Assembly: GCA_002269645.1 (NCBI GenBank)
Contig: NIVC01002204.1
Span: forward strand, 62,001 to 126,000
Direction: 5' to 3'
DNA length: 64,000 nucleotides
DNA from: Macrostomum lignano
Lineage: Eukaryota
A program made the translations under genes and the position numbers. The notes below the pieces were generated by a model. The model worked only from the letters and a program-made list of their open reading frames with translations, made no database searches and was not told the origin of the DNA. This document shows, in pieces, positions 7,501-51,700 of the stretch. Position 1 is the first letter of the stretch. Each line of letters opens with the position of its first letter.

Positions 7501-10500
7501 TGATTTCGTCTTTTTTCGAGCGTTTTTTAATCCCGCCACTGTTTATCTAGGCTATCAACCAACCTGTCATAAATTATGTGCAGGGAAATTTATAAAAATT
7601 CCCGTATAGTTTACAATTCTGTTGAGCGAAATGGCCACCTGTCGAAGTGATGTAAGCATGTCAATCACAGATGGGCTTCTGGGCATGATTTTCGGGGATT
7701 TCTGATTACCTAAAAAATGTGCCTACGATTTTGAGGGCTTTGATTAAAAAAAGCAGTTTCAGAACTGGCACGTTTATATAGCATGGGAGAAATTTGGGAG
7801 ATAGGATAGAGGAATGTTAATTAGGAAGTTGGGCAATATAGGACAGGGACAGAAAAATGAGAAGGATATTGATGGGGGAGATAAGAGACGGATATTGGGG
7901 GAGATAAGAGACGGATATTGGGGGAGATAAGAGACGGATATAGGGGGAGATAAGAGACGGATATTAGGGAGATAAAAAACGGATATTGGGGAGATAAGAG
8001 ATTGATATTGGGGAGATAAGAGACGGATATTGGGGGAGATAGAAGACGGATATTGGGGGAGATAAGAGACGGATATAGGGGAAGATTAGAGACGGAGATT
8101 GGAGGAGATTATAGACGGAGATTGGAGGAGATAAGAGACGGAGATTGGAGGAGATAAGAGACGGAGATTGGAGAAGATAAGAGACGGAGATTGGAGGAGA
8201 TTAGAGACAAAGATTGGAGGAGCTTAGAGACGGAGATTGGAGAAGATAAGAGACGGAGATTGGAGAAGATAAGAGACGGAGATTGGAGAAGATTAGAGAC
8301 GGAGATTGGAGAAGATTAGAGACGGAGATTGGAGGAGATAAGAGACGGAGTTTGGAGAAGATTAGAGACGGAGATTGGAGAAGATTAGAGACGGAGATTG
8401 GAGGAGATAAGAGACGGTGATTGGAGGGGATAAGAGACGGACATAGGGGGTGATTAGAGACGGAGATTGGAGAAGATAAGAGACGGTGATTGGAGAAGAT
8501 TAGAGACGGAGATTGGAGGAGATAAGAGACGGTGATTGGAGAAGATTAGAGACGGAGATTGGAGAAGATAAGAGACGGAGATTGGAGAAGATAAGAGACG
8601 GAGATTGGAGAAGATTAGAGACGGAGATTGGAGGAGATAAGAGACGGTGATTGGAGAAGATTAGAGACGGAGATTGGAGGAGATAAAAGACGGAGATTGG
8701 AGAAGATAAGAGACGGAGATTGGAGAAGATTAGAGACGGAGATTGGAGAAGATTAGAGACGGAGATTGGAGGAGATAAGAGACGGAGATTGGAGGAGATA
8801 AGAGACGGAGATTGGAGGAGATAAGAGACGGTGATTGGAGAAGATAAGAGACGGTGATTGGAGGGGATAGGAGACGGATATAGGGGGAGATTAGAGACGG
8901 AGATTGGAGGAGATAAGAGACGGTGATTGAAGGGGATAGGAGACGGATATAGGGGGAGATTAGAGACGGAGATTGGAGAAGATTATAGACGGAGATTGGA
9001 GGAGATAAGAGACGGAGATTGGAGAAGATAAGAGACGGAGATTGGAGGAGATTAGAGACAAAGATTGGAGGAGCTTAGAGACGGAGATTGGAGAAGATAA
9101 GAGACGGAGATTGGAGAAGATAAGAGACGGAGATTGGAGAAGATAAGAGACGGAGATTGGAGAAGATTAGAGACGGAGATTGGAGAAGATTAGAGACGGA
9201 GATTGGAGGAGATAAGAGACGGAGTTTGGAGAAGATTAGAGACGGAGATTGGAGAAGATTAGAGACGGAGATTGGAGGAGATAAGAGACGGTGATTGGAG
9301 GGGATAAGAGACGGACATAGGGGGTGATTAGAGACGGAGATTGGAGAAGATAAGAGACGGTGATTGGAGAAGATTAGAGACGGAGATTGGAGGAGATAAG
9401 AGACGGTGATTGGAGAAGATTAGAGACGGAGATTGGAGAAGATAAGAGACGGAGATTGGAGAAGATAAGAGACGGAGATTGGAGAAGATTAGAGACGGAG
9501 ATTGGAGGAGATAAGAGACGGTGATTGGAGAAGATTAGAGACGGAGATTGGAGGAGATAAGAGACGGAGATTAGAGAAGATAAGAGACGGAGATTGGAGA
9601 AGATTAGAGACGGAGATTGGAGAAGATTAGAGACGGAGATTGGAGGAGATAAGAGACGGAGATTGGAGGAGATAAGAGACGGAGATTGGAGGAGATAAGA
9701 GACGGTGATTGGAGAAGATAAGAGACGGTGATTGGAGGGGATAGGAGACGGATATAGGGGGAGATTAGAGACGGAGATTGGAGGAGATAAGAGACGGTGA
9801 TTGAAGGGGATAGGAGACGGATATAGGGGGAGATTAGAGACGGAGATTGGAGAAGATAAGAGACCGAGATTGGAGGAGATTAGAGACGGAGATTGGAGAA
9901 GATAAGAGACCGAGATTGGAGGAGATTAGAGACGGAGATTGGAGGAGATTAGAGACGGAGATTGGAGAAGATAAGAGACGGAGATTGGAGGAGATAAGAG
10001 ACGGTGATTGGAGGGGATATGAGACGGTGATTGGAGAAGATTAGAGACGGAGATTGGAGGAGATTAGAGACGGAGATTGGAGAAGATAAGAGACGGAGAT
10101 TGGAGGAGATAAGAGACGGTGATTGGAGGGGATATGAGACGGTGATTAAAGGATAAGATAATCAAACAACAGGCAGAATAAGTTTTCGCTCTGACACACT
10201 TGCAGACTTACCAACTCGCAGCAATGGGAATCTTTCCTGGCACCTGCACCAGCCGTGGCTGCAACTTTCGACTCAAGAGAACCAGCTGCCACTAATGCTT
10301 CATCAACCTGGTCTATCATCGATATCGACATCGACGGAAACTCGAGCCGTCCAGGTGACTGCGGCGGCTGCGGCGGCAGCGGCGGCGGCTGCGGCAGCGA
10401 CGGCCATTGAGCTGTCGCAGCAGCTCATCCTGAGAAGGCATCAAACATTGCCTACGCGGAGTTCTAAGCGATTATCGTCGAATGATTTTTCCAAAATTCA

Positions 10501-16117: not shown

Positions 16118-19100
16118 TCACAGTCTAATCATATCTGTGACGGCTTTCTGCGAGCGCAGCTCAGCGCTCATCTTGGTCAGACCGATCAGGTGCAGAATTC
16201 GAATTAATTCGCCTGAAGTTGCTAAATGAGATTTCTCCTCTTGCCAGGCTAGAAATCCCTGCATTGGTGGTAGTTGAGATGGAGATGTGGATGCTTGGAT
16301 TGATGTCCAGTACTAACAGATGCACGTGTGCCAGCTGCAGCGGGGCGCGCCAACTACAGATGAGGCGCCAGCTACAGAGGGGGCGCCAACTACAGATGAG
16401 GCGCCAGCTACAGAGGGGGCGCCAGCTACAGATGGGGCGCCAGCTACAGAGGGGGCGCCAGCTACAGAGGGGGCGCCAGCTGCAGATGGGGCGCCAGCTA
16501 CAGAGAGGGCGCCAGCTACAGAGGGGGCGCCAGCTACAGAGGGGGCGCCAGCTACAGAGGGGGCGCCAGCTACAGATGGGGAGCCAGCTACAGAGGGGCG
16601 CCAGCTACAGAGAGGGCGCCAGCTACAGAGGGGGCGCCAGCTACAGAGGGGGCGCCAGCTACAGATGGGGCGCCAGCTACAGAGGGGTCGCCAGCTACAG
16701 AGGGGGCGCCAGCTACAGAGGGGGCGCCAGCTACAGAGGGGGCGCCAGCTACAGAGGGGGCGCCAGCTACAGATGGGGCGCCAGCTACAGATGGGGAGCC
16801 AGCTACAGAGGGGCGCCAGCAACAGATGGGGCGCCAGCTACAGATGAGGCGCCAGCTACAGAGGGGGCGCCAGCTACAGAGGGGGCGCCAGCTACAGATG
16901 GGGAGCCAGCTACAGAGGGGGCGCCAGCTACAGATGAGGCGCCAGCTACAGAGGGGGCGCCAGCTACAGATGGGGCGCCAGCTACAGAGGGGGCGCCAGC
17001 TACAGATGGGGCGCCAGCTACAGAAGGGCGCCAGCTACAGAGGGGGCGCCAGCTACAGAGGGGGCGCCAGCTACAGATGGGGCGCCAGCTACAGATGGGG
17101 AGCCAGCTACAGAGGGGCGCCAGCAACAGATGGGGCGCCAGCTACAGATGAGGCGCCAGCTACAGAGGGGGCGCCAGCTACAGAGGGGGCGCCAGCTACA
17201 GAGGGGGCGCCAGCTACAGATGAGGCGCCAGCTACAGAGGGGGCGCCAGCTACAGATGGGGCGCCAGCTACAGAGGGGGCGCCAGCTACAGAGGGGGCGC
17301 CAGCTACAGAGGGGGCGCCAGCTACAGATGGGGCGCCAGCTACAGAGGGGGCGCCAGCTACAGAGGGGGCGCCAGCTACAGATGGGGCGCCAGCTACAGA
17401 TGGGGAGCCAGCTACAGAGGGGCGCCAGCAACAGATGGGGCGCCAGCTACAGATGAGGCGCCAGCTACAGAGGGGGCGCCAGCTACAGATGGGGAGCCAG
17501 CTACAGAGGGGGCGCCAGCTACAGATGAGGCGCCAGCTACAGAGGGGGCGCCAGCTACAGATGGGGCGCCAGCTACAGAGGGGGCGCCAGCTACAGAGGG
17601 GGCGCCAGCTACAGATGGGGAGCCAGCTACAGAGGGGCGCCAGCAACAGATGGGGCGCCAGCTACAGATGAGGCGCCAGCTACAGAGGGGGCGCCAGCTA
17701 CAGAGGGGGCGCCAGCTACAGATGGGGAGCCAGCTACAGAGGGGGCGCCAGCTACAGATGAGGCGCCAGCTACAGAGGGGCGCCAGCTACAGATGGGGCG
17801 CCAGCTACAGAGGGGGCGCCAGCTACAGATGGGGCGCCAGCTACAGAAGGGCGCCAGCTACAGAGGGGGCGCCAGCTACAGAGGGGGCGCCAGCTACAGA
17901 TGGGGCGCCAGCTACAGATGGGGAGCCAGCTACAGAGGGGCGCCAGCAACAGATGGGGCGCCAGCTACAGATGAGGCGCCAGCTACAGAGGGGGCGCCAG
18001 CTACAGAGGGGCGCCAGCTACAGAGGGGGCGCCAGCTACAGATGAGGCGCCAGCTACAGAGGGGGCGCCAGCTACAGATGGGGCGCCAGCTACAGAGGGG
18101 GCGCCAGCTACAGAGGGGCGCCAGCTACAGAGGGGGCGCCAGCTACAGATGGGGCGCCAGCTACAGAGGGGGCGCCAGCTACAGAGGGGGCGCCAGCTAC
18201 AGATGGGGCGCCAGCTACAGATGGGGAGCCAGCTACAGAGGGGCGCCAGCAACAGATGGGGCGCCAGCTACAGATGAGGCGCCAGCTACAGAGGGGGCGC
18301 CAGCTACAGATGGGGAGCCAGCTACAGAGGGGGCGCCAGCTACAGATGAGGCGCCAGCTACAGAGGGGGCGCCAGCTACAGATGGGGCGCCAGCTACAGA
18401 GGGGGCGCCAGCTACAGAGGGGGCGCCAGCTACAGATGGGGCGCCAGCTACAGATGGGGAGCCAGCTACAGAGGGGGCGCCAGCTACAGAGGGGGCGCCA
18501 GCTACAGATGAGGCGCCAGCTACAGAGGGGCGCCAGCTACAGAGGGGGCGCCAGCTACAGACGGGGCGCCAGCTACAGATGAGGCGCCAGCTACAGATGA
18601 GGCGCCAGCTACAGATGGGGAGCCAGCTACAGAGGGGGCGCCAGCTACAGATGGGGCGCCAGCTACAGATGGGGCGCCAGCTACAGATGAGGCGCCAGCT
18701 ACAGATGGGGCGCCAGCTACAGATGGGGAGCCAGCTACAGAGGGGGCGCCAGCTACAGAGGGGGCGCCAGCTACAGATGGGGCGCCAGCTACAGAGGGGG
18801 CGCCAGCTATAGAGGGGGCGCCAGCAACAGATGGGGCGCCAGCTACAGATGAGGCGCCAGCTACAGAGGGGGCGCCAGCTACAGATGGGGCGCCAGCTAC
18901 AGATGGGGTGCCAGCTACAGATGGGGCGCCAGCTACAGAAGGGCGCCAGCTACAGATGGGGCGCCAGCTACAGAGGGGGCGCCAGCTACAGATGGGGCGC
19001 CAGCTACAGAGAGGGCGCCAGCTACAGATGGGGCGCCAGCTACAGAGAGGGCGCCTGCTACATAGATAAAATACGTCCTTATAGATTTTAGCATCTACAC

Positions 19101-29112: not shown

Positions 29113-29850
29113 ATGCTGTCATTTCTATCTCGTCGAATCTTGGCTGCTCCCGCGCGGCTCTCTCTGCCCCAGCGCTGCCTTAGCGACAAGCTATTCGTCC
29201 ATCGGGACACGCCAGAAAACAATGTAGACACTCCGTTCGAATTTACGCCAGAAAATCTCGAACGAGCTCGAAGTTTGATTTCAAACTATCCTGTTGGACA
29301 CGAGCGCGCCGCTATGATGCCGCTGTTAGATTTGGCTCAGCGCCAGCACGGCGGCTGGTTGCCGATTTCTGCTATGCACTGCGTTGCCGACATGTTGAAG
29401 GTGCCGCGTATGCGAGTGTACGAAGTGGCCACCTTCTACACTATGTACAATCGCGACCCGATTGGCAAATATCATGTACAGATCTGTACTACAACTCCCT
29501 GCATGCTGGGCGGCTGCGGCTCCGGATCAATATTGGACACTTGCAAACGGGTGCTGGGGTTGAAGCCGGGCCAGACAGACTCTGAGCGGCTGTTCACCCT
29601 GTCTGAAGTGGAATGCCTTGGCGCCTGCGTCAACGCGCCAATGGTGCAGATTAACGACGACTACTACGAAGACCTGACACCGGAGGATACTGAAGCCATC
29701 CTCATGGCGTTGAAGCGGGGCGAGAAGCCGCCGAAACCCGGGCCGCAGTCTGGCCAGGACTGGCGGCACTGCTGCGAACCCAAGGGCAATTTGACCTCGC
29801 TGACCGAACCGCCTAAAGGTCCTGGATTTAAAGTTCTGCCTGAACTTTGA
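29113..29850 (+). CDS. NDUFV2: NADH:ubiquinone oxidoreductase 24 kDa flavoprotein subunit, intronless, 245 aa
   Basis: [52 protein letters not shown], [2Fe-2S] ligands CTTTPC and [12 protein letters not shown]-terminal PGP.SG...[17 protein letters not shown]. Confidence 0.97.
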
Positions 29851-30478: not shown

Positions 30479-30570
30479 GTTTTTAAACAGAAGAATCAAT
30501 ATAGATCTGCATGTTGCTATCCTCTTCACATGGTTATTCGTTGCATTTCAGCTAATACCTCGCCGCTATC

Positions 30571-33557
30571 ATGTCGCAAAAGCACTCTCAATCGATGATA
30601 AAATTCCTGGTATTTGCTTTAGGAATTTTTATTAGTTATTTTGTCTACGGATTGTTGCAGGAGAAAATGTGAGATTTTTCTATAACTGATAAAAATGCTT
30701 TATATTTATGCAATAAATATGTTTATTGCTGCTAGCTAAAATTTAACTATAATTTCATTTCGCAGCACAAAGACTGAGTACGGTCTGGACAAACAGACTT
30801 TTACGTTCACCTGCAGTATGGTGCTTATTCAGTGCGCCATTAATGCGGCATTCGCCGTGATTGGTGAGTCTAAGTGTATTTGTGTGTGTTGGGGATCTTT
30901 GTTTCTTTTGAAATTGTGCTTCTCATTCTTTATTTCTGCTATATTATTGTCAGACTTTATTTCTAATGTTGTTCAGTCTTTGTTTTTGATGTATGCCGGT
31001 CTTTGTTTCTGATGGTAGGCGGCATTTGTTTCTTATGTGTGTCGGGTCTTTGTTTCTGATGTGTGACGGTCTTTGTTTCTGATGTGTGTCAGTCTTTGTT
31101 TCTGATGTGTGTCAGTCTTTGTTTCTGATGTGTGTCAGTCTTTGTTTCTGATGTGTGTCGGTCTTTGTTTCTGTTGTGTGTCAATCTTTGTTTCTGATGT
31201 GTGACGGTCTTTGTTTCTGATGGTAGGCAGCATTTGTTTCTTATGTGTGTCGGGTCTTTGTTTCTGATGTGTGACGGTCTTTGTTTCTGATGTGTGTCAG
31301 TCTTTGTTTCTGATGTGTGTCGGTCTGTTTCTGATGTGTGTCGGTCTTTGTTTCATGTCTTTGTAATAGTTAATACATAGATTTCCTGCATTCCAGTTCC
31401 CGTGGTAATTTCATCTGGATCTTCATCGGCTGACAGCACCTGGCGAGTTCCACCGTCAGCCTCCGTGTATTCATTTGCACTGGCTGCGTTTACCTACATC
31501 ACCGCAATGTGGTCTAGTAATGCCGCACTTCAGTTCGTATCCTATCCCACACAGGTGAGCTCAATAGTTATGGATTTATAATTTACAGTCATTTTAGGAA
31601 GGGCAAATTAGGTGCAGGGAGATCAGGGTGTGGGGTGCAGGGAGATCAGGGTGTGGGGTGCAGGTAGATCAGGGTGTGGGGTGCAGGTAGATCAGGGTGT
31701 GGGGTGCAGGTAGATCAGGGTGTGGGGTGCAGGTAGATCAGGGTGTGGGGTGCAGGTAGATCAGGGTGTGGGGTGCAGGTAGATCAGGGTGTGGGGTGCA
31801 GGTAGATCAGGGTGTGGGGTGCAGGTAGATCAGGGTGTGGGGTGCAGGGAGATCAGTGTGTAGGGTGCAGGTAGATCAGGTGTGGGGTGCAGGTAGATCA
31901 GGTGTGGGGTGCAGGGAGATCAGGGTGCAGGGAGATCAGGGTGCAGGGAGATCAGGGTGCAGGGAGATCAGGGTGCAGGGAGATCAGGGTGCAGAGAGAT
32001 CAGGGTGCAGGAAGATCAGGGTGCAGGGAGATCAGGGTGCAGGGAGATCAGGGTGCAGGAAGATCAGGGTGCAGGGAGATCAGGGTGCAGGGAGATCAGG
32101 GTGCAGAGAGATCAGGGTGCAGGAAGATCAGGGTGCAGGGAGATCAGGGTGCAGGGAGATCAGGGTGCAGGGAGATCAGGGTGCAGGGAGATCAGGGTGC
32201 AGAGAGATCAGGGTGCAGGAAGATCAGGGTGCAGGGAGATCAGGGTGCAGGGAGATCAGGGTGCAGGGAGATCAGGGTGCAGGGAGATCAGGGTGCAGGG
32301 AGATCAGGGTGCAGGAAGATCAGGGTGCAGAGAGATCAGGATACACGGGAAAAGGTACAAAGCCTGTGCCTCTACCAATCGACATCCCAGGTGCTGGGGA
32401 AGTCATGCAAGCCAATCCCAGTGATGCTGTTAGGCCTGCTATTCGGCAAACGCTATCCAATGATAAAATACCTGCTAGTGCTGATCATTGTTGTTGGCGT
32501 ATCGTTATTCCTGATGAAAGACAGCAAAGGCACAGGCCCGGACACCGATCACAGCTTTGGTTTTGGAGAGTTTCTATTGGTAAGTTAATGCTTGTTGTGT
32601 TTTTGTTTCAATTGGTTTCAATAATTGGAAACCTGTCTTGAATTGTTAATATTTCCTATTGACAATCATTTCAGCTGGTCTCTCTGCTATGCGACGGACT
32701 CACTGGTTTAGTGCAGGATCGAATCTGTTTAAAGCATAACTCAGTGTCCAGCTTTGCTATGATGTTCCAGATGAATTTGTGGTCTACTATCTATCTGTTT
32801 GTTGGTAAGCTTTATTGCTCTCTATTTCATTGAAAATTTTGAGGCACTTTTGTTTGCAAAGCACTGCTTCTTCTGTTAGCAAAGCACTGCTTCTTCTGGT
32901 AGCAAAGCACTGCTTCTTCTGTTAGCAAAGCACTGCTTCTTCTGTTAGCAAAGCACTGCTTCTTCTGTTAGCAAAGCACTGCTTCTTCTGTTAGCAAAGC
33001 ACTGCTTCTGTTAGCAAAGCACTGCTTCTTCTGGTTGCAAATCACTGCTTCTTCTGGTTGCAAATCACTGCTTCTTCTGGTTGCAAATCACTGCTTTTTC
33101 TGCTTATTTTGCCTTTAAAATCACAGTTTTTGTCAAAAATTGACTACCCGACAATTCAATTAAGGATTCTCTCCCTTCTGTCACTGTTTTAGTTGCCGTA
33201 GCAACAGGCGAACTGCCTCAGTTCGTCGCATTCGTCGTGCAATACCACACCGTACTGTGGGACATCCTGCTGTTTAGCCTGTGCAGCGCCCTCGGCCAGC
33301 TGTTCATCTTTGCCACCGTGGTTAATTATGGCCCGTTGAACTGCTCCTTGGTGACCACTACTCGAAAGTTCTTCACCATTCTCGGCTCCGTGATTCTGTT
33401 TGGTCACCCGCTGACTAACAGGCAGTGGCTTGGCACCTGCCTGGTCTTTGTTGGCCTTTTTGGCGAGTCTCTGGTTAAGAGGAAGCCGAATCTGGTTGCT
33501 CCTGCTGCTTCTGCTGACGCTGCGGTTGCTAATGGCAATGGGAAGAAAGCTCAATAG
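30571..33557 (+). CDS. SLC35B1: Solute carrier family 35 member B1 (UGTrel1/AXER-like ER transporter); 6 exons, 345 aa
   Basis: Exons 30571-30668, 30766-30863, 31397-31554, 32391-32579, 32675-32804, 33193-33557 (1038 nt, in phase). Motifs [82 protein letters not shown]; C-terminal KKAQ ER-retrieval-like signal. Confidence 0.94.
30995..31350. repeat. 23-bp minisatellite (GTCTTTGTTTCTGATGTGTGTCA)
   Basis: SLC35B1 intron 2. Confidence 0.9.
31612..32340. repeat. 23-bp (GGGTGTGGGGTGCAGGTAGATCA) array contracting to a 16-bp (GGGTGCAGGGAGATCA) array
   Basis: SLC35B1 intron 3; source of the three repeat ORFs at 31835-32641. Confidence 0.93.
32855..33100. repeat. 23-bp minisatellite (GCAAAGCACTGCTTCTTCTGTTA)
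   Basis: SLC35B1 intron 5. Confidence 0.9.
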
Positions 33558-39520: not shown

Positions 39521-39789
39521 GGAATATCCCTAGCTATTTCTCGTCCCCTGTTTCTCATTCCCTGCTTCTCATCTTTATCACTAATTAGTTACTCAAACGC
39601 TGAGTAGCATCCTTCCCGTCATTATCATTAGGGAACCCCAATATTTTGTTGGTTCACAATCGGACTTCTTAGAATATGTTTATAAAACATTCAGCTCGCA
39701 TTCTCGCATGCCAGGGCGCTCGCACATCGCCGCGGCTCGACAACTGTTGAAATAGCATCGAATCACGCCACCAGCATAATTTAACAGCC

Positions 39790-41608
39790 ATGAAAATCTC
39801 TCGCCGCGTAGCCGCCCAGCTTCTGCTAATCTTCATCGCCCAATCAGCGCTGATGTACAGGGAAACTGAAAGCATGAAACTCCTGCAAGCTGGTGAGGAT
39901 CTGGCTTTCTTACATTTTATCGCGCCTTATAAAGTCATTTTCACTACATATCGGTTACAAGAAGTCCGAATTCCAAAATGTATTTTTCGCCTTTTAAAAA
40001 ATCTAGTGTAAATCTATCGGCAGGTCTATCTAAACGGGACATCTATTACATCTCTATCTGTTACATCTATTACATCTATTTACATCTATTACATCTCTAT
40101 CTAAACGGGATTAGAGATCCCGATTTGTTTGCATGGTTTAGAATTTTTTTACGCTGCATATCGTCTTAGTAGATCTTTGCATTTGTGCGCCTTGTAAAGT
40201 TATTGACGCTACATATCGACGGTTTTTGACTACGCAAACAGCTCTGCAGATTGTACTTTTGGCAAGAAAACCTTAACGACTTTCTAAGAGTAAATTGTAG
40301 ATCTCATTCTTCAGAACTTCTCTGAGCCTTCACAAACAAAGATTAGAGGACCAAAAGAGGGACAACGCAAGGACGCAGCTGCGAGGCGAGAAAGTCGAGG
40401 CTGTAAAATGTAGCAGCCAGAAGGCTAAGACGGAGCTCAAAGGAAGAATAAGTCTCCTTTTCTGCTAACTGTCAGTTGCTGCGTGACTAGCATCGTGTCG
40501 TCACAAGCTCTGTCTGGCACTCGGTACTTTCCAAAGCGGGGACATTTCGGATTCTAAATCTAACAATTTGGCTGCAAACAGAGCAACGCCTTTTATGAGC
40601 TTATTCAGACCTCGGTCATTATCGGTTGATTATCCAATATTTGCCTGAGCACGAGTCCGAAATTTATGCGGGCGGCCTATTTTCGGACAGCACAAACTCC
40701 TCTACAAGGTTCTCGTATACATGACATCCTATCAGTTCGTTTGCGTTATACGTTGAAAATATTTTTATTATCGCACGGAATCGAACCCGGGCACTTGCGT
40801 TTAGAGTCGGACGCGTTTACCGCTGAGCTACTGCGACCCCCTCCTTCTAGGCAGTTTGACAGGCTATGTAAAGTTCTTAAAGCCCCAAACACCTCTACTG
40901 CACCTCTAAACACCTCTAAACATCTCTAAACACCTCTAAACACCTCTAAACACCTCTAAACATCTCTAAACACCTCTAAACACCTCTAAACACCTCTAAA
41001 CACCTCTAAACACCTCTAAACACCTCTAAACACCTCTAAACATCTCTAAGCACCTCTAAACATCTCTAAACACCTAAACGTCTCTAAACATCTCTAAACA
41101 TCTCTAAACACCTCTAAACATCTCTAAACATCTCTAAACACCTCTAAACATCTCTAAACACCTCTAAACATCTCTAAACACCTCTAAACATCTCTAAACA
41201 CCTCTAAACATCTCTAAACATCTCTAAACACCTCTAAACATCTCTAAACATCTCTAAACACCTCTAAACATCTCTAAACACCTCTAAACATCTCTAAACA
41301 CCTCTAAACATCTCTAAACACCTCTAAACATCTCTAAACACCTCTAAACATCTCTAAACACCTCTAAACATCTCTAAACACCTCTAAACACCTTTAAACA
41401 CCTCTAAATATCTCTAAACACCTCTACTGCAGGCGCTGCCTACAAGCGATTTCTGTACTATTCGAACGGCAACTGCGAGACATTCGATATACGATGCTTC
41501 AGCCAGCGCGACTGCCAGATGGCTTACGGTCCGGGGCATCAGTGCGTGATTCTGAGATGCTCCCTGAGCTGCCAGCTGCTGCCATCTGACAGAGGCCGCA
41601 TCGCCTGA
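39790..41608 (+). CDS. Uncharacterised secreted cysteine-rich peptide precursor; 2 exons, 92 aa
   Basis: Exon 1 39790-39892 (gccATG; MKISRRVAAQLLLIFIAQSALMYRETESMKLLQA; donor G|GTGAGG) joins in phase 1 to exon 2 41433-41608 (acceptor CTGCAG): GAAYKR-FLYYSNGNCETFDIRCFSQRDCQMAYGPGHQCVILRCSLSCQLLPSDRGRIA*. Signal-peptide-like N-terminus, KR site, six Cys; TATAAAA at 39681, AATAAA at about 41760. Confidence 0.72.
40770..40837 (-). pseudogene. Degenerate tRNA-like sequence (tRNA pseudogene or SINE head) in the peptide-gene intron
   Basis: Minus strand GTCGCAGTAGCTCAGCGGTAAACGCGTCCGACTCTAAACGCAAGTGCCCGGGTTCGATTCCGTGCGAT: A box, B box and partial acceptor stem (TCGCA/TGCGA), but unpaired anticodon stem and shortened T arm. 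Confidence 0.6.
40888..41428. repeat. 10-bp array (CTCTAAACAC/CTCTAAACAT)
   Basis: Peptide-gene intron; runs right up to the exon 2 acceptor. Confidence 0.95.
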
Positions 41609-41827
41609 GTCAGTTCGGCATCAACTCAAACTAAAATGATTTCAAGACCAATGCAACAACTTCGTCTACATTTAAGTAGGGAATGATTCAACATGTTGCC
41701 AACTCTGAACCAATTAAAACAATTTCTTCATTTTATCGGCTACTGACCTTTTTTGGAGAAATAAACATAAAGACAAAAGGTTCGATTGGAATTTAATTCT
41801 TGGTTAACCACATTTCAGAGCAAGAAT

Positions 41828-45745: not shown

Positions 45746-48700
45746 CTACTGACCCACGAACTTTCTCTCCTCGCCCCTAGCCAGCAGCACGTCCCTCTCC
45801 AGCGTGGGCCCCTTGCGCTCGGTAGCGAAGCTGGTCTTCTCGTAGCTCTGCCCGCCGCAACGGCGGCACGGCTCGGTTGGATAGCGGCAGTCCAAGGTGA
45901 ACGTCGTCTGTTTGCAGTCCTTGCACCTGGTGAAATTAAGTAGTTTAATTAGGTCATGATCCACAAAATACCAAAGCGATTTAAATTTTGTGATTCCATA
46001 TGAACTTTTTGTGCCGATCCCGCATCGAGAGTCCCGATCCCACATCTAGAGTCCCGATCCCACATCGAGAGTCCCGATCCCACATCTAGAGTCCCGATCC
46101 CACATCTAGAGTCTCGATCCCACATCTAGAGTCTCGATCCCACATCTAGAGTCCCGATCCCACATCTAGAGTCCCGATCCCCATGAAGAGTCCCGATCCC
46201 ACATCTAGAGTTCCGATGCCACATCTAGAGTCCCGATCCCGATGAAGAGTCCCGATCCCCATGAAGAGTCCCAATCCCAACAGCAAGCAAGCATGAGTCT
46301 CACTTGAACGGCCTCTTCACCGCAGTAGTCCAATTCAGCTGGTGTCCCTCTCGTTTGCACCTCTCGCTAGGCTGCTGACACCTCACTCCGCACTGGGCGC
46401 AGTCGGCTACCCGAACTTTCCTCTCCGTAATGGTGGCCAATTTAGCTTCGACTTGCTCCTTTCGCTCCAGCGTATTGAAATAGCTGTCCTGCTCTTTGCT
46501 GACGCGATCGCTAGCTAATTCGGCGTAGGCAGACGATTGCGACATTAGACGAAGGAATTCCGGCGATTCAGTATCGATGTTGCCTAACAGCCGGTGTTGC
46601 CGAGCAGGCTTGCTAACCGTTGAGGCTTGAGTCTCGGCGGCATCTCCAACAGAATCTTCGTTGAGTCGCTGGTTGAGTTCGGCTAGACGGCGCTGGCTCT
46701 GCTGCTGTTGGAGCTGCTCCATGCCGCCCGCTGCTCGCATCTGACAGAAGGGGGGGGGGGGGGTGAGACGGAGCTACTCTGTTGTAAGCCTGATTGTGCA
46801 CGGTTTTGGGCGCTTCTGACACTAATTATAAAGGTTCCATATTTCATTTGGGACGTCTGACATCTTAGTAGGCGCGTCTGTCATCTTAATCTGAGCGTCT
46901 GACACCTTATTTGGAGCGTGACACCTAATTGGGAGTATCTGACACCTAATTGGGAGTATCTGACACCTAATTGGGAGTATCTGACACCTAATTGGCAGAT
47001 TATCTGACACCTAATTGGCAGATTATCTGACACCTAATTGGCAGATTATCTGACACCTAATTGGCAGATTATCTGACACCTAATTGGGAGTATCTGACAC
47101 ATAATTGGGAGTATCTGACACCTAATTGGCAGATTATCTGACACCTAATTGGGAGTATCTGACACCTAATTGGCAGATTATCTGACACCTAATTGGCAGA
47201 TTATCTGACACCTAATTGGCAGATTATCTGACACCTAATTGGCAGATTATCTGACACCTAATTGGCAGAGTATCTGACACCTAATTGGCAGATTATCTGA
47301 CACCTAATTGGCAGATTATCTGACACCTAATTGGCAGATTATCTGAGACCTAATTGGCAGATTATCTGACACCTAATTGGCAGATTATCTGACACCTAAT
47401 TGGCAAATTATCTGACACCTAATTGGCAGATTATCTGACACCTAATTGGCAGATTATCTGACACCTAATTGGCAGAGTATCTGACACCTAATTGGCAGAT
47501 TATCTGACACCTAATTGGCAAATTATCTGACACCTAATTGGCAAATTATCTGACACCTAATTGGCAGATTATCTGACACCTAATTGGCAGATTATCTGAC
47601 ACCTAATTGGCAGATTATCTGACACCTAATTGGCAGATTATCTGACACCTAATTGGCAGATTATCTGACACCTAATTGGCAAATTATCTGACACCTAATT
47701 GGCAGATTATCTGACACCTAATTGGCAGATTATCTGACACCTAATTGGCAGATTATCTGACACCTAATTGGCAGATTATCTGACACCTAATTGGCAGATT
47801 ATCTGACACCTAATTGGCAGAGTATCTGACACCTAATTGGCAGATTATCTGACACCTAGTTGGCAGATTATCTGACACCTAATTGGCAAATTATCTGACA
47901 CCTAATTGGCAGATTATCTGACACCTAATTGGCAGATTATCTGACACCTAATTGGCAGATTATCTGACACCTAATTGGCAGATTATCTGACACCTAATTG
48001 GCAGATTATCTGACACCTAATTGGCAGATTATCTGACACCTAATTGGCAAATTATCTGACACCTAATTGGCAGATTATCTGACACCTAATTGGCAGATTA
48101 TCTGACACCTAATTGGCAGATTATCTGACACCTAATTGGCAGATTATCTGACACCTAATTGGCAGATTATCTGACACCTAATTGGCAGATTATCTGACAC
48201 CTAATTGGCAGATTATCTGACACCTAATTGGCAGAGTATCTGACACCTAATTGGCAGATTATCTGACACCTAATTGGCAGATTATCTGACACCTAATTGG
48301 CAGAGTATCTGACACCTAATTGGCAAATTATCTGACACCTAATTGGCCAGCACGATTATCTGACCCCTAATCTAAGACATTAAGTCTGAAGTTTTTCAGC
48401 ACTTTTGGCTTCTTTGGGCGTGGGAATGTCGCTAATGCAAAAAAGAGAAAATGGCAACTTGTTTTTTGTCGCAATGATTAATGGGGAACAAACGTCTGGG
48501 TGTGTAATTTATGAATAAAGGCGAGCAGCCTATGCTATAAAAGGTAAGTTGTAATCATTGTTTTCATAGGCAATAAGATTATAAGATGTAGAACAGAGTT
48601 AAAAGAGAAAACGAAAAATAAAGTTGAATAGGAAAACTATCGGTAATATACTTTTTTGCTACTTATGAGTAGCAAGTAAAAAACTCTTGCTTTTAGAGAA

Positions 48701-51700
48701 AACACGTATTATATGCATTTCTTCGAAGTCTATGGAGTAACGTGGGTGCCTGTGAAGTGAGGTGGGTGCCTGTGAAGTGAGGTGGGTGCCTATGGAGAGA
48801 GGTGGGTGTCTATGGAGTGAGATGTGTATCAATGGAGAGTGTTGGGTGTCTATGGAGAGAGGTGGGTGTGTATGGAGAGAGGTGGTTGTCTATGGAGTGA
48901 GGTTTGTATGTCTATGGAGAGAGGTGGGTGTCTATGGAGAGAGTTGGGTGTCTATGGAGAGAGGTGGGTGTCTATGGAGAGAGGTGGGTGTCTATGGAGT
49001 GAGATGTGTATCAATGGAGAGTGTTGGGTGTCTATGGAGAGAGGTGGGTGTGTATGGAGAGAGGTGGTTGTCTATGGAGTGAGGTTTGTATGTCTATGGA
49101 GAGAGGTGGGTGTCTATGGAGAGAGTTGGGTGTCTATGGAGAGAGGTGGGTGTCTATGGAGAGAGGTGGGTGTCTATGGAGTAAAGTGGGTGTCTATGGA
49201 GTGAGATGTGTATCAATGGAGAGTGTTGGGTGTCTATGGAGAGAGGTGGGTGTGTATGGAGAGAGGTGGTTGTCTATGGAGTGAGGTTTGTATGTCTATG
49301 GAGAGAGGTGGGTGTCTATGGAGAGAGTTGGGTGTCTATGGAGAGAGGTGGGTGTCTATGGAGAGAGGTGGGTGTCTATGGAGTAAAGTGGGTGTCTATG
49401 GAGTGAGGTTTGTATGTCTATGGAGAGAGTTGGGTGTCTATGGAGAGAGGTGGGTGTCTATGGAGTAAAGTGGGTGTCTATGGAGTGAGGTTTGTATGTC
49501 TATGGAGAGAGTTGGGTGTCTATGGAGAGAGGTGGGTGTCTATGGAGAGAGGTGGGTGTCTATGGAGTGAGCTGGGTGTCTATGGAGTGAGGTGGGTGTC
49601 TATGGAGTGAGTTGGGTGTGTATGGACTGAGATGGGTGTCTATGGAGTGGGGTGGGTGTCTATGGAGAGAGGTGGGTGTCTATGGAGAGATGTGGGTGTG
49701 TATGGAGTGAGGTGGGTGTCTAAGGAGTAATCTGGGTGTCTTTAAAAGCAATACCGGTATTAAATGAAAGAAAACTGAATAATAATAGAGATATTGCTTA
49801 CCTTCTTAATTGCCTTCAACTTGGCAATCTCTCCAACAGACATCACAGTCGGTTTGGGCAGCACCGGACCAGCCTGATTACTTGGACAGGTGTCGTTCAA
49901 ATCGACGATGTCGCCAACCCCACAGCCTCGGCCGAGAGTTGGCCGAAAATCTCGATTCATTCCGGCCGCAAATTCTGAGAATGCCAAATTTGTGCCGCTG
50001 CTAGGATCCGGCATGCCGACCCGGCTGATGCCGGAAAATGGAACCGAAGAAGATTGGCTCTGTTGCTGCGACTGGTTTTTCTGCTTCTGTGTCGTGACTG
50101 ACACTTCAATAGACCGACGCAGCATTCGAGCACCGGGCGAATTGCTGGCCGAAGCGTTCTGCTGCTGCAGGAAGGCTCGAATTCCGCTGACGCCACCGCC
50201 GCCGCTTGTCGCGGAGGCCTGCGACGTTGACAAGCTTGACGAAGGAGACTGGCCAAATTTGATGCTGCTGTTGTTGTTGCTCTTCAAAAATGTGACGCCA
50301 ATCGGACTGGCGGCTGCCGCGGCCAACGGCTTGTGGGGCTGTGGGAAGAGAAATTGAGTGGGGTGGGTATTTTCGGAGTGAGGTGGGTGTCTACGGAGTG
50401 AGGTGGGTATTTGCGGAGTGAAGTGGGTGTCTACGGAGTGAGGTGGGTGTCTGTGGAGTGGTGGGTGTCTGTGGTGTGAGGTGGCTGTCTAGAGAGTGAG
50501 GTGGGTGTTTGTGGAGTGAGGTGGGTGTCTGTGGTGTGAGGTGGGTGTCTGTGGTTTGAGGTGGGTGTCTGTGGTGTGAGGTGGCTGTCTGTGGTGTGAG
50601 GTGGCTGTCTAGAGAGTGAGGTGGGTGTTTGTGGAGTGAGGTGGGTGTCTGTGGTGTGAGGTGGGTGTCTGTGGTGTGAGGTGGCTGTCTAGAGAGTGAG
50701 GTGGGTGTTTGTGGAGTGGGGTGGCTGTCTAGAGAGTAAGGTGGGTGTTTGTGGAGAGTGGGTGTCTAGGGAATGAGGTGGGTGTTTGTGGAGAGTGGGT
50801 GTCTAGGGAGTGAGGTGGGTGTTTGTGGAGAGTGGGTGTCTAGGGAGTGAGGTGGCTGTCTAGAAAGTGAGGTGGCTGTCTAGGGAGTGAGGTGAGTGTC
50901 TGCAGAGTTGTGTGGCTGTCTGCGGAGTGAGGTGGGTGTTTCCAGTGTGAGGTGGATATCTGCGGAGTGAGAAGGGGGGTCTGAAGAGCAACGTTAGAAG
51001 CTACGGAATGACTAAGAAGGCTAGGAAGAGTGGTGGATACTCGTACCCTCAAAGCGGTCCCTCACCTCGCGATACTTCCTAGGCTCCACTCCAACAAAGG
51101 TGGACGCCACATCCGACCGTTTGCTAGCCAGCCTCCTGTACTCCTGACCAGCGTGATACTCGCACACCGGACACACGGCCAAATTAACGGCATTCTGGCA
51201 GCGGCCACCGTTGTTTCCGGATTTAGTCGGCCGGCCGCAGACTCCATAATCGGCTGCTTTGCCCAGGATAAGCAGCTGCTGCGGATTGTCTATGGCCAGA
51301 CTCATTCCTGAGAGATGGTTTTTTAATATGGAATCTTATGTCTGATATCTAGGAGACAATGACTCAACATTTAATCTGTGATATCTAACCTAAACTATGT
51401 CTGCACCTCTACCTTTGACGGCTCACCTTCGATCTATGAGACCGCACTATCCAACCTAACTCCTATGTAATCTCAACTAGTGACCTATGAGATATTTGAA
51501 CCCTTTAATCTAGGAGGTCTTAACCTATCATCTATGAGATCTTATTTATATCCGCTAACGTTAGAGATCTAACTTTTTATTGATGAGATCTGAACCTTTA
51601 CTTATTATATCTCACCCTCTATCGATGAGATCCCAACTTATGATCTATGAGATCCCAACTAATGACCTACGAGATCTCATCTTTTGATCTATGAGATCCA

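Follow-up and report, generated by a model that had tools for sequence, protein, structure and literature searches.

A predicted secreted six-cysteine peptide with a KR processing site, and its family of paralogous genes, in Macrostomum lignano

Several described classes of cysteine-rich peptides invite comparison with the gene product presented here. Domains of the ShKT type (PF01549; ShK, BgK) have a mainly helical fold with disulfides C1-C6, C2-C4 and C3-C5 and carry six cysteines in about 35–40 residues, ending C-x3-C-x2-C, while WAP domains (PF00095; SLPI, elafin, omwaprin) are small disulfide-rich secreted domains with eight cysteines and a central CC. Defensin genes typically form small lineage-restricted families, in which a phase-1 intron parts the signal exon from the exon for the mature peptide. 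The prepropeptides of prohormones and toxins (e.g. conotoxin precursors) place a signal, a pro-region and a dibasic KR before a Cys-rich mature part. In conotoxin-type precursors it is the signal and pro-region that are conserved and the mature part that varies, and a conserved mature domain under purifying selection is the opposite of the usual pattern among toxins and antimicrobial peptides. The innate effectors of flatworms are poorly catalogued. We describe a genuine transcribed gene of the flatworm Macrostomum lignano, encoding a 92-aa preproprotein; our reading of it as a whole, with the processing and the extracellular role proposed below, has a probability of roughly 0.6.

The gene lies on the forward strand of the window, by which we mean the whole 64-kb stretch of DNA analysed. 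Coding exon 1 (39790..39892, 103 nt) opens with the ATG at 39790 (Met1), reaches one base into codon 35, specifies the signal peptide (approximately aa 1–19, 39790–39846) and the start of the pro-region, and ends in the donor CTG|GTGAGG. It is followed by a 1540-nt GT..AG intron in phase 1 (39893..41432) and, after the acceptor CTCTACTGCAG|GCGCTG at 41432/41433, by coding exon 2 (41433..41608, 176 nt), which runs from the remainder of the pro-region through the KR site and the six-cysteine domain to the C-terminal tail and a TGA stop codon at 41606–41608. The two exons sum to 279 nt (103 + 176), that is, 92 codons plus the stop. This two-exon model with its phase-1 junction had been proposed in an earlier note on this DNA and is confirmed here; the joined exons translate to the same 92-aa protein. 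Only the lack of a start codon, with in-frame stops just upstream, kept exon 2 off the list of open reading frames. A tblastn search of the window with the paralog domains matched exon 2 only and thus revealed no further family copies within the 64 kb.

The gene is not hidden, as the note had described it, for its coding sequence is already in GenBank from transcript evidence. It corresponds exactly, boundaries included, to PAA60013.1 (BOX15_Mlig004136g3, "hypothetical protein") on NIVC01002204.1 of M. lignano assembly Mlig_3_7; the gene span of 1819 nt equals that of 39790–41608, and every base of the GenBank locus is the same as window 29790–51608. Since the GenBank model has the same CDS and boundaries, the two-exon reading is more than chance. 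The BOX15 annotation rests solely on assembled RNA-seq (StringTie/TACO together with a de novo transcriptome), in which TransDecoder called the ORFs (PMC5730564), and by way of this transcript-based annotation there is indirect support that the junction 39892/41433 is probably used in transcripts. The older automatic models at the Mlig004136 locus are clearly wrong fusions. One of these, WormBase/UniProt A0A1I8FFU4, joins upstream transporter exons (window 32405–33485) to '...GESA-MKISRR', which needs an acceptor at 39786..39787. A candidate 3' splice acceptor AG is found there (+ strand; aacAG|CC ATG), separated from the start codon by two bases, and may serve as a spliced-leader trans-splice or read-through acceptor; polycistronic, trans-spliced units have been reported in M. 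lignano (PMC5730564). The candidate TATA box (TATAAA, 39681..39686, +), about 105 nt upstream of the ATG, and the candidate polyadenylation signal (AATAAA, 41760..41765, +), about 150 nt past the stop, are pattern positions with putative roles. An ATTAAA pattern is also present at 41713, 3' of the gene.

The intron is rich in repeats. A 10-bp minisatellite (AAACACCTCT; 40887..41426, +; about 54 copies) extends right up to the exon 2 acceptor and provides the pyrimidine-rich stretch before it, and a smaller second repeat is located near 40020–40110. A degenerate tRNA-like element on the opposite strand of the intron (40768..40838, −) was reported by ARAGORN only at a lowered threshold; missed both at ARAGORN's default settings and by Rfam (E ≤ 1), it was rejected as a tRNA gene and is probably a tRNA-derived repeat or pseudogene.

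Although the peptide had been considered an orphan, in the strict sense it is not, the window gene belonging to a family of four M. lignano loci. Mlig004136 itself has two near-identical extra genomic copies (g1 and g2) of the same architecture, with intact ORFs in all three, and an exhaustive phmmer search identified three older paralog groups, Mlig025436, Mlig006190 and Mlig017203 (E = 6e-8 to 3e-5). Common to all four groups are a signal-peptide exon (exon 1 of 103, 97, 91 and 103 nt), an intron invariably in phase 1, and a domain exon. In every group K-R-F leads directly into the conserved start F-[LM]-[YF]-x-S-[NG]-G-x-C, and the spacing of the six cysteines is 6,5,9/10,4,3. Across eight aligned members K39, R40, F41, S45, G47, C49, C56, F57, D61, C62, C72, C77 and C81 are invariant; the pro-regions and C-terminal tails are unalignable.

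The six-cysteine domain is under purifying selection, with dN/dS between paralog groups of 0.06–0.42 at a dS of about 1–3. Among the Mlig004136 copies the CDS diverges by 1.4–2.5%, as against up to 10% in the intron plus upstream sequence. Exact copies of the minisatellite number 47 in the window gene versus 76–78 in the other two, which accounts for most of the difference in intron length (1540 nt versus 2190 and 2201 nt). The four-locus family is uncharacterised, and the conservation seen in its sequences is between paralogs and not between species, because no relative was found outside M. lignano.

The signal-peptide and cleavage calls were made by simple heuristics (hydropathy and the (-3,-1) rule), which agree with the earlier description of a hydrophobic, signal-like N-terminus. 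The n-region is basic (K2, R5, R6), the h-region VAAQLLLIFIA comprises 11 residues with a mean Kyte-Doolittle hydropathy of 2.66, and the candidate cleavage site is IAQS|ALMY; a hydrophobic h-region and (-3,-1) cleavage candidates recur in each of the four groups. As had been stated, the Cys-rich part is immediately preceded by K39-R40 (41444..41449, +), the predicted proprotein-convertase site, which is invariant across the family alignment and in all four groups. The residue after it, F41, is invariant too, so that the KR-F junction occurs in 8/8 aligned sequences, next to an unalignable pro-region. It is this conservation among paralogs that supports KR as a dibasic processing site. Residues P4–P1 before the cleavage are AYKR, RAKR, ISKR or KTKR in the four groups, Mlig017203 having K at P4. 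Three of the four groups thus lack a P4 arginine and misfit the strict furin consensus R-x-K/R-R; judged by their sequence, such sites would be compatible with PC1/PC2-type processing.

The predicted mature peptide comprises F41–A92 (52 aa; 41450..41605, +), with its cysteine core, C49–C81, at 41474–41572 (+), and the spacing C-x6-C-x5-C-x9-C-x4-C-x3-C read from the DNA has been verified. Its net charge is +1, that of Mlig025436 is −1, and those of two other paralogs are +5 and +3. The suggestion that the C-terminal R-G-R might be an amidation signal finds no support in conservation among the paralogs: R-G-R-I-A ends all three Mlig004136 copies, but the tail is not conserved and none of the three other paralog groups has a Gly-basic motif there.

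That the cysteine pattern fits no named family is borne out by the Pfam, PDB sequence, Foldseek and hhalign results. At E ≤ 10 Pfam produced nothing relevant for the window protein, its paralogs or the isolated domains. Sub-threshold matches to Late-nodulin, PAN_3 and DUF5332 were taken as noise; the 'Late nodulin' match to Mlig006190 scored 19.7 bits with the whole protein (cut-off 30.4) and reached its best E-value, 2e-4, with the domain alone. Searches of PDB sequences, first by the single protein and then by a profile of the family, produced chance matches only (E ≥ 0.65). Exhaustive phmmer against 1.84 billion representatives returned only M. lignano proteins and one duck protein, XP_071890466, which was rejected as a repeat-inflated chance match: it is made of an 81-aa unit repeated five times in tandem, and only three cysteines align in each unit. 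No similarity to named hormone or toxin families appeared in the Pfam, PDB and phmmer sequence searches. Word-indexed homologue searches with the window protein, the domain alignment and one paralog yielded M. lignano entries only, a weak negative because known paralogs were missed. Back-translated motifs had 122 pattern matches in a metagenome scan, but tblastn confirmed none of them, and the gene IDs, accessions and peptide motifs of the family were not found in the searchable literature.

An AlphaFold2 model built from the domain alignment predicts, with only moderate confidence (mean pLDDT 73; 85–87 in the core), a compact domain with a beta-alpha-beta-beta arrangement. Foldseek comparison of this model with the PDB revealed no match below E = 2 and no probability above 0.28, the best of these non-significant matches being to the WAP domains of SLPI, elafin and omwaprin and to scorpion toxins.

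A short protein without a Pfam domain or a homologue outside M. lignano, lying in a window of which about 46% is tandem repeat and where the earlier automatic models are plainly erroneous, might be a transcribed but meaningless ORF taken up by TransDecoder. We consider this very improbable: frame, intron phase, KR and six cysteines have been kept in four diverged groups with dN/dS well below 1, and the ORF is intact in three genomic copies whose CDS is more conserved than their intron. That there is a real gene for a secreted, KR-processed cysteine-rich peptide is, in our estimation, highly probable. Such a peptide could be some other secreted gland product, for instance a protein of the seminal fluid or of reproduction, an inhibitor of proteases, or an accessory peptide for adhesion or the eggshell, in which the KR is incidental or serves maturation only. 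The prostate and other glands of M. lignano express many small lineage-restricted secreted proteins (PMC5977470), the failure of phmmer, the metagenome scan and the homologue searches to find relatives in other organisms would suit one of these, and the weak top Foldseek matches are to protease-inhibitor domains. However, no WAP or Kunitz HMM match was obtained, and the paralogs, being old (dS ≥ 1) and under constraint, contrast with the rapidly evolving reproductive proteins described in Macrostomum. Neither the gene IDs nor the motifs of the peptide occur in the supplementary text, itself possibly incomplete, of the M. lignano seminal-fluid screen and other expression papers, which is weak evidence because these studies may use other ID schemes. 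We regard a gland product of this kind as improbable.

The exon layout within a small lineage-restricted multigene family would equally suit a host-defence (antimicrobial, defensin-like) or toxin-like peptide whose targets would be microbial membranes or lie in other organisms, with no endogenous receptor involved. The predicted beta-alpha-beta-beta order recalls the cysteine-stabilised alpha/beta peptides, the weak WAP and scorpion toxin matches and the sub-threshold 'Late nodulin' match of Mlig006190 point the same way, and two of the paralogs are cationic. Nevertheless, the window peptide is almost neutral and Mlig025436 anionic, every structural match is non-significant, the CxxxC and CxC motifs are missing, and selection has been purifying, not diversifying, the mature domain being the most conserved part of the precursor. 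We therefore judge a defence or toxin-like role to be rather unlikely, if less so than a gland product.

Between a signalling ligand and a defence peptide, for what would be a three-disulfide peptide, signalling is slightly favoured. Its sequence suggests that its most likely role is that of an extracellular ligand, acting as a peptide hormone or in the manner of a neuropeptide, because the mature part, including its cysteine-free N-terminal residues, is what has been conserved, and because signal, pro-region and net charge vary while the KR fits PC1/PC2. Counted within the share of probability given to a real secreted, KR-processed peptide gene, signalling nonetheless stands somewhat short of an even chance; a two-exon gene in a small multigene family, with a helix-plus-hairpin model, would fit a defensin-like peptide equally. 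In the mechanism we propose, the signal peptide would be cut near Ser19/Ala20 as the protein enters the ER, the C-terminal domain would form three disulfides, and a subtilisin-like proprotein convertase would cut after K39-R40, removing the short unconserved pro-region. A peptide of about 52 aa would then be secreted with the conserved F-L-Y-x-S-N-G-x-C motif at its N-terminus.

Quite tentatively, the four Mlig loci might constitute an undescribed cysteine-rich hormone or neuropeptide family, restricted to flatworms and possibly to macrostomids, in which the conserved N-terminus F-[LM]-[YF]-x-S-[NG]-G, exposed by the convertase, would activate the receptor from a three-disulfide scaffold of a fold absent from the PDB. 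A signalling-peptide family would enlarge the flatworm neuropeptide repertoire by a lineage-specific ligand, and a defence peptide would represent an effector family for flatworms. In practical terms the gain is a modest one in either case: for a "hypothetical protein" there is now the architecture of the precursor, a likely site of processing and a definition of the family.

The affinity to ShKT or WAP domains suggested by the earlier note is unsupported. The first three spacers are comparable in length to those of ShKT peptides, and as in these the last three cysteines stand close together, but all four groups end C-x4-C-x3-C, no member has a Pfam ShK match at E ≤ 10, and when hhalign compared the family alignment with four ShK-type toxins the probability was 1.4%. 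The predicted domain, moreover, has one helix and a beta-hairpin, and no ShK structure is among the Foldseek matches. UniProt automatically names A0A267DLA0 (Mlig025436) 'ShKT domain-containing' and other Mlig025436 models 'BPTI/Kunitz'; the two labels are inconsistent with each other, and both prove unsupported; there was no Pfam match to PF00014 even among the models bearing the Kunitz name. The likeness to WAP domains resides in a local C-x-S-x-x-D-C, noted earlier, and in Foldseek matches that are the best obtained though non-significant (E 2–10, TM 0.39–0.43); the window peptide has only six cysteines and no CC, and lacks a Pfam WAP match.

Defensin-type peptides share with the family six cysteines and the gene layout, and the predicted order of secondary structure is compatible with theirs. 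C-x6-C-x5-C-x9 comes near the opening of the beta-defensin pattern, but the terminal CC of beta-defensins is absent, as are the motifs of the cysteine-stabilised alpha/beta class; scorpion toxins were matched by Foldseek only at E 3.5–6.5, and the net charge is not consistently cationic. The precursor as a whole has the plan of the prepropeptides of prohormones and toxins, with signal, pro-region and dibasic KR before the Cys-rich mature part. It differs from the conotoxin type in that conservation in the M. lignano family lies in the mature part, while signal and pro-region vary.

The gene was read on the plus strand over 39600-41800. Its start codon ATG lies at 39790, and exon 1 (103 nt) ends at 39892, followed by the donor GTGAGG; a phase 1 intron of 1540 nt with the 3' end CTCTACTGCAG leads to exon 2 (41433-41608, 176 nt), which closes with TGA. 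In-silico splicing and translation of the 279 nt CDS gives MKISRRVAAQLLLIFIAQSALMYRETESMKLLQAGAAYKRFLYYSNGNCETFDIRCFSQRDCQMAYGPGHQCVILRCSLSCQLLPSDRGRIA, in which the cysteine spacers are 6, 5, 9, 4 and 3 residues. On the same strand TATAAA is found at 39681 and AATAAA at 41760. Since exon 2 contains no start codon and has in-frame stops immediately upstream, it was missed by the start-to-stop ORF list. The two-exon model, the junction and the translation proposed in the earlier note were all reproduced by splicing the two exons; the observation stands, and support for the precursor architecture is good.

The description of this gene as hidden does not hold. The protein is 99-100% identical to M. 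lignano proteins in GenBank and 100% identical to PAA60013.1 (BOX15_Mlig004136g3), where the same CDS is deposited as a "hypothetical protein". The locus of PAA60013.1 on NIVC01002204.1 (GCA_002269645.1, Mlig_3_7) covers 1819 nt which are exactly 39790-41608, and its 21.8 kb surroundings (L002) are identical to window 29790-51608; the gene was therefore already annotated. The BOX15 annotation was built solely on transcripts assembled from RNA-seq (StringTie/TACO together with a de novo transcriptome), with boundaries set by the TBONE pipeline and ORFs called by TransDecoder (PMC5730564). Because the annotation is RNA-seq-derived, the 39892/41433 junction has indirect transcript support.

Earlier WormBase/UniProt models of this locus are plainly erroneous fusions. 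In P0005 (A0A1I8FHC4, 230 aa) residues 1-71 of the peptide run into a translated 20 bp minisatellite (49834-50319), a clear annotation artefact which persists in UniRef. P0004 (A0A1I8FFU4, 177 aa) joins exons of the upstream transporter (32405-33485) to the peptide via an AG that precedes the ATG by two bases. This candidate acceptor (39786-39787, plus strand) hints at read-through, at a trans-splice/spliced-leader acceptor or at a polycistronic precursor, polycistronic or spliced-leader arrangements having been described for ~7% of M. lignano transcription units (PMC5730564); the join could also be a prediction artefact.

Two further copies of Mlig004136, g1 on NIVC01001016.1 and g2 on NIVC01001279.1, have exon boundaries identical to those of the window copy. 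All three share one gene order, being preceded by a UAA/TPT nucleotide-sugar transporter and followed by Mcm10, which is encoded on the opposite strand. The annotated neighbours in the window are the end of a gene for a 2Fe-2S thioredoxin-like protein (~29790-29850), the UAA/TPT/EamA transporter (30565-33557, plus strand) and Mcm10 (45746 to at least 51608, minus strand). The copies diverge by 1.4-2.5% in the CDS as against up to ~10% in their introns and upstream sequence. Such a set of copies fits the hidden polyploidy published for the species (PMC10733133).

The introns of g1 and g2 measure 2190 and 2201 nt compared with 1540 nt here, and this gap of ~650 nt is mostly minisatellite copy number: a 10 bp minisatellite at 40887-41426, reaching up to the 3' splice site, has 47 exact units in the window copy versus 76-78 in the other two. 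A degenerate tRNA-like cloverleaf within the window copy's intron at 40768-40838 (minus strand), found by ARAGORN at a lowered threshold only and reported by neither default ARAGORN nor Rfam, may be the remnant of a tRNA-derived repeat. Tandem repeats make up ~46% of the 64 kb window (TRF score ≥100), as dozens of separate minisatellite arrays with units mostly of 10-40 bp in introns and intergenic DNA, among them 7873-10147 (23 bp x 99), 16330-19062 (18 bp x 153) and 46919-48347 (23 bp x 63). These arrays account for numerous long but spurious ORFs in the mechanical list.

Run exhaustively against 1.84 billion representative proteins, phmmer recovered three paralog groups in M. lignano, Mlig025436 (E = 6e-8), Mlig006190 (9e-7) and Mlig017203 (3e-5), so that the peptide is not an orphan in the strict sense. 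A duck protein (P0007, Anas platyrhynchos XP_071890466.1, 4e-7) was rejected as a repeat-inflated chance match; it consists of five identical 81-aa repeats and scores via a repeated C-x6-C-x5-C stretch. All four groups have a phase 1 intron, with exon 1 measuring 103, 97, 91 and 103 nt from the Met and the remainder of the CDS in a single exon. The invariant residues begin at the dibasic site and comprise K39, R40, F41, S45, G47, C49, C56, F57, D61, C62, C72, C77 and C81; no alignment across groups was obtained for the signal and pro-regions. The cysteine spacers of the three paralog groups are 6, 5, 10, 4 and 3, compared with a third spacer of 9 in the window peptide. Over 37 alignable domain codons dN/dS is 0.06-0.42 (Nei-Gojobori) and synonymous sites are close to saturated; it follows that the duplications are old and that purifying selection acts on the domain. 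Together these comparisons argue strongly for a functional protein family. Outside M. lignano no relatives came from word-indexed searches, whose negatives are weak in that they also missed known paralogs, and none was accepted from the exhaustive phmmer or a metagenome motif scan; the family is apparently lineage-restricted. The gene identifiers, accessions and peptide motifs do not occur in the searchable literature or in searchable supplementary text of M. lignano papers.

The signal-peptide-like N-terminus was borne out heuristically in all four precursors: a hydrophobic core with a mean hydropathy of 2.65-3.42 across 11 residues follows an N-terminus that is basic or neutral, and the (-3,-1) rule yields candidate cleavage sites, IAQS|ALMY in the window protein. 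Of the processing features, the KR site has the best support: its flanking residues vary, yet the KR-F junction is the same in every group. Proprotein convertases PC1/3 and PC2 cleave at dibasic sites, whereas furin follows the strict consensus R-x-K/R-R. Residues P4-P1 are AYKR, RAKR, ISKR and KTKR; only RAKR matches the furin consensus, and the other three appear better suited to PC1/3- or PC2-type cleavage. All three copies of Mlig004136 retain the C-terminal R-G-R suggested to be an amidation/cleavage signal; the paralogs, whose tails are unrelated, have no counterpart. Such a signal is possible but unsupported.

Nor could the suggested nearness to ShKT and WAP be upheld. No family member matched Pfam (E ≤ 10) beyond sub-threshold noise, the best score being "Late nodulin" (19.7 bits versus a cut-off of 30.4), and PDB sequence searches with the single protein and the family profile gave chance matches only. 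AlphaFold2 with the family alignment gave pLDDT 64 for the whole precursor and 73 for the domain alone (core 85-87), modelled as a compact unit with a short strand, one helix and a beta-hairpin. Foldseek against PDB yielded no match under E = 2; the highest-ranking matches, none of them significant, were WAP domains (SLPI, elafin, omwaprin) and scorpion toxins. Profile-profile comparison with four ShK-type toxins gave a probability of 1.4%. The automatic UniProt names of Mlig025436 models (P0006, P0009, P0012), one "ShKT domain-containing" and the others "BPTI/Kunitz inhibitor domain-containing", are mutually inconsistent and were not reproduced by Pfam HMMs. As the defining motifs of ShKT, WAP, Kunitz and defensin classes were tested and are absent, the family is not filed under any of them.

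This is a real, constrained gene family of small secreted-looking precursors with a conserved dibasic junction. The precursor would enter the ER, form three disulfides and be cleaved by a convertase after KR, whereupon a peptide of ~48-53 aa would be secreted. We slightly favour an endogenous signalling ligand (probability roughly 0.4) on three counts: conservation resides in the mature part, its cysteine-free N-terminus included; net charge ranges between -1 and +5 across groups; and the domain evolves under purifying selection. A role in defence or as a toxin-like peptide ranks second and is rather unlikely; the defensin-like gene layout, the helix-plus-hairpin of the predicted structure and the cationic nature of some paralogs speak for it. 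Another gland product or an inhibitor comes third and is unlikely, and a non-functional ORF is very improbable. With defensins the family shares the layout of the gene, but not the motifs which define that class; the peptide is an uncharacterised variant within a well-known class, that of secreted propeptides rich in cysteine.
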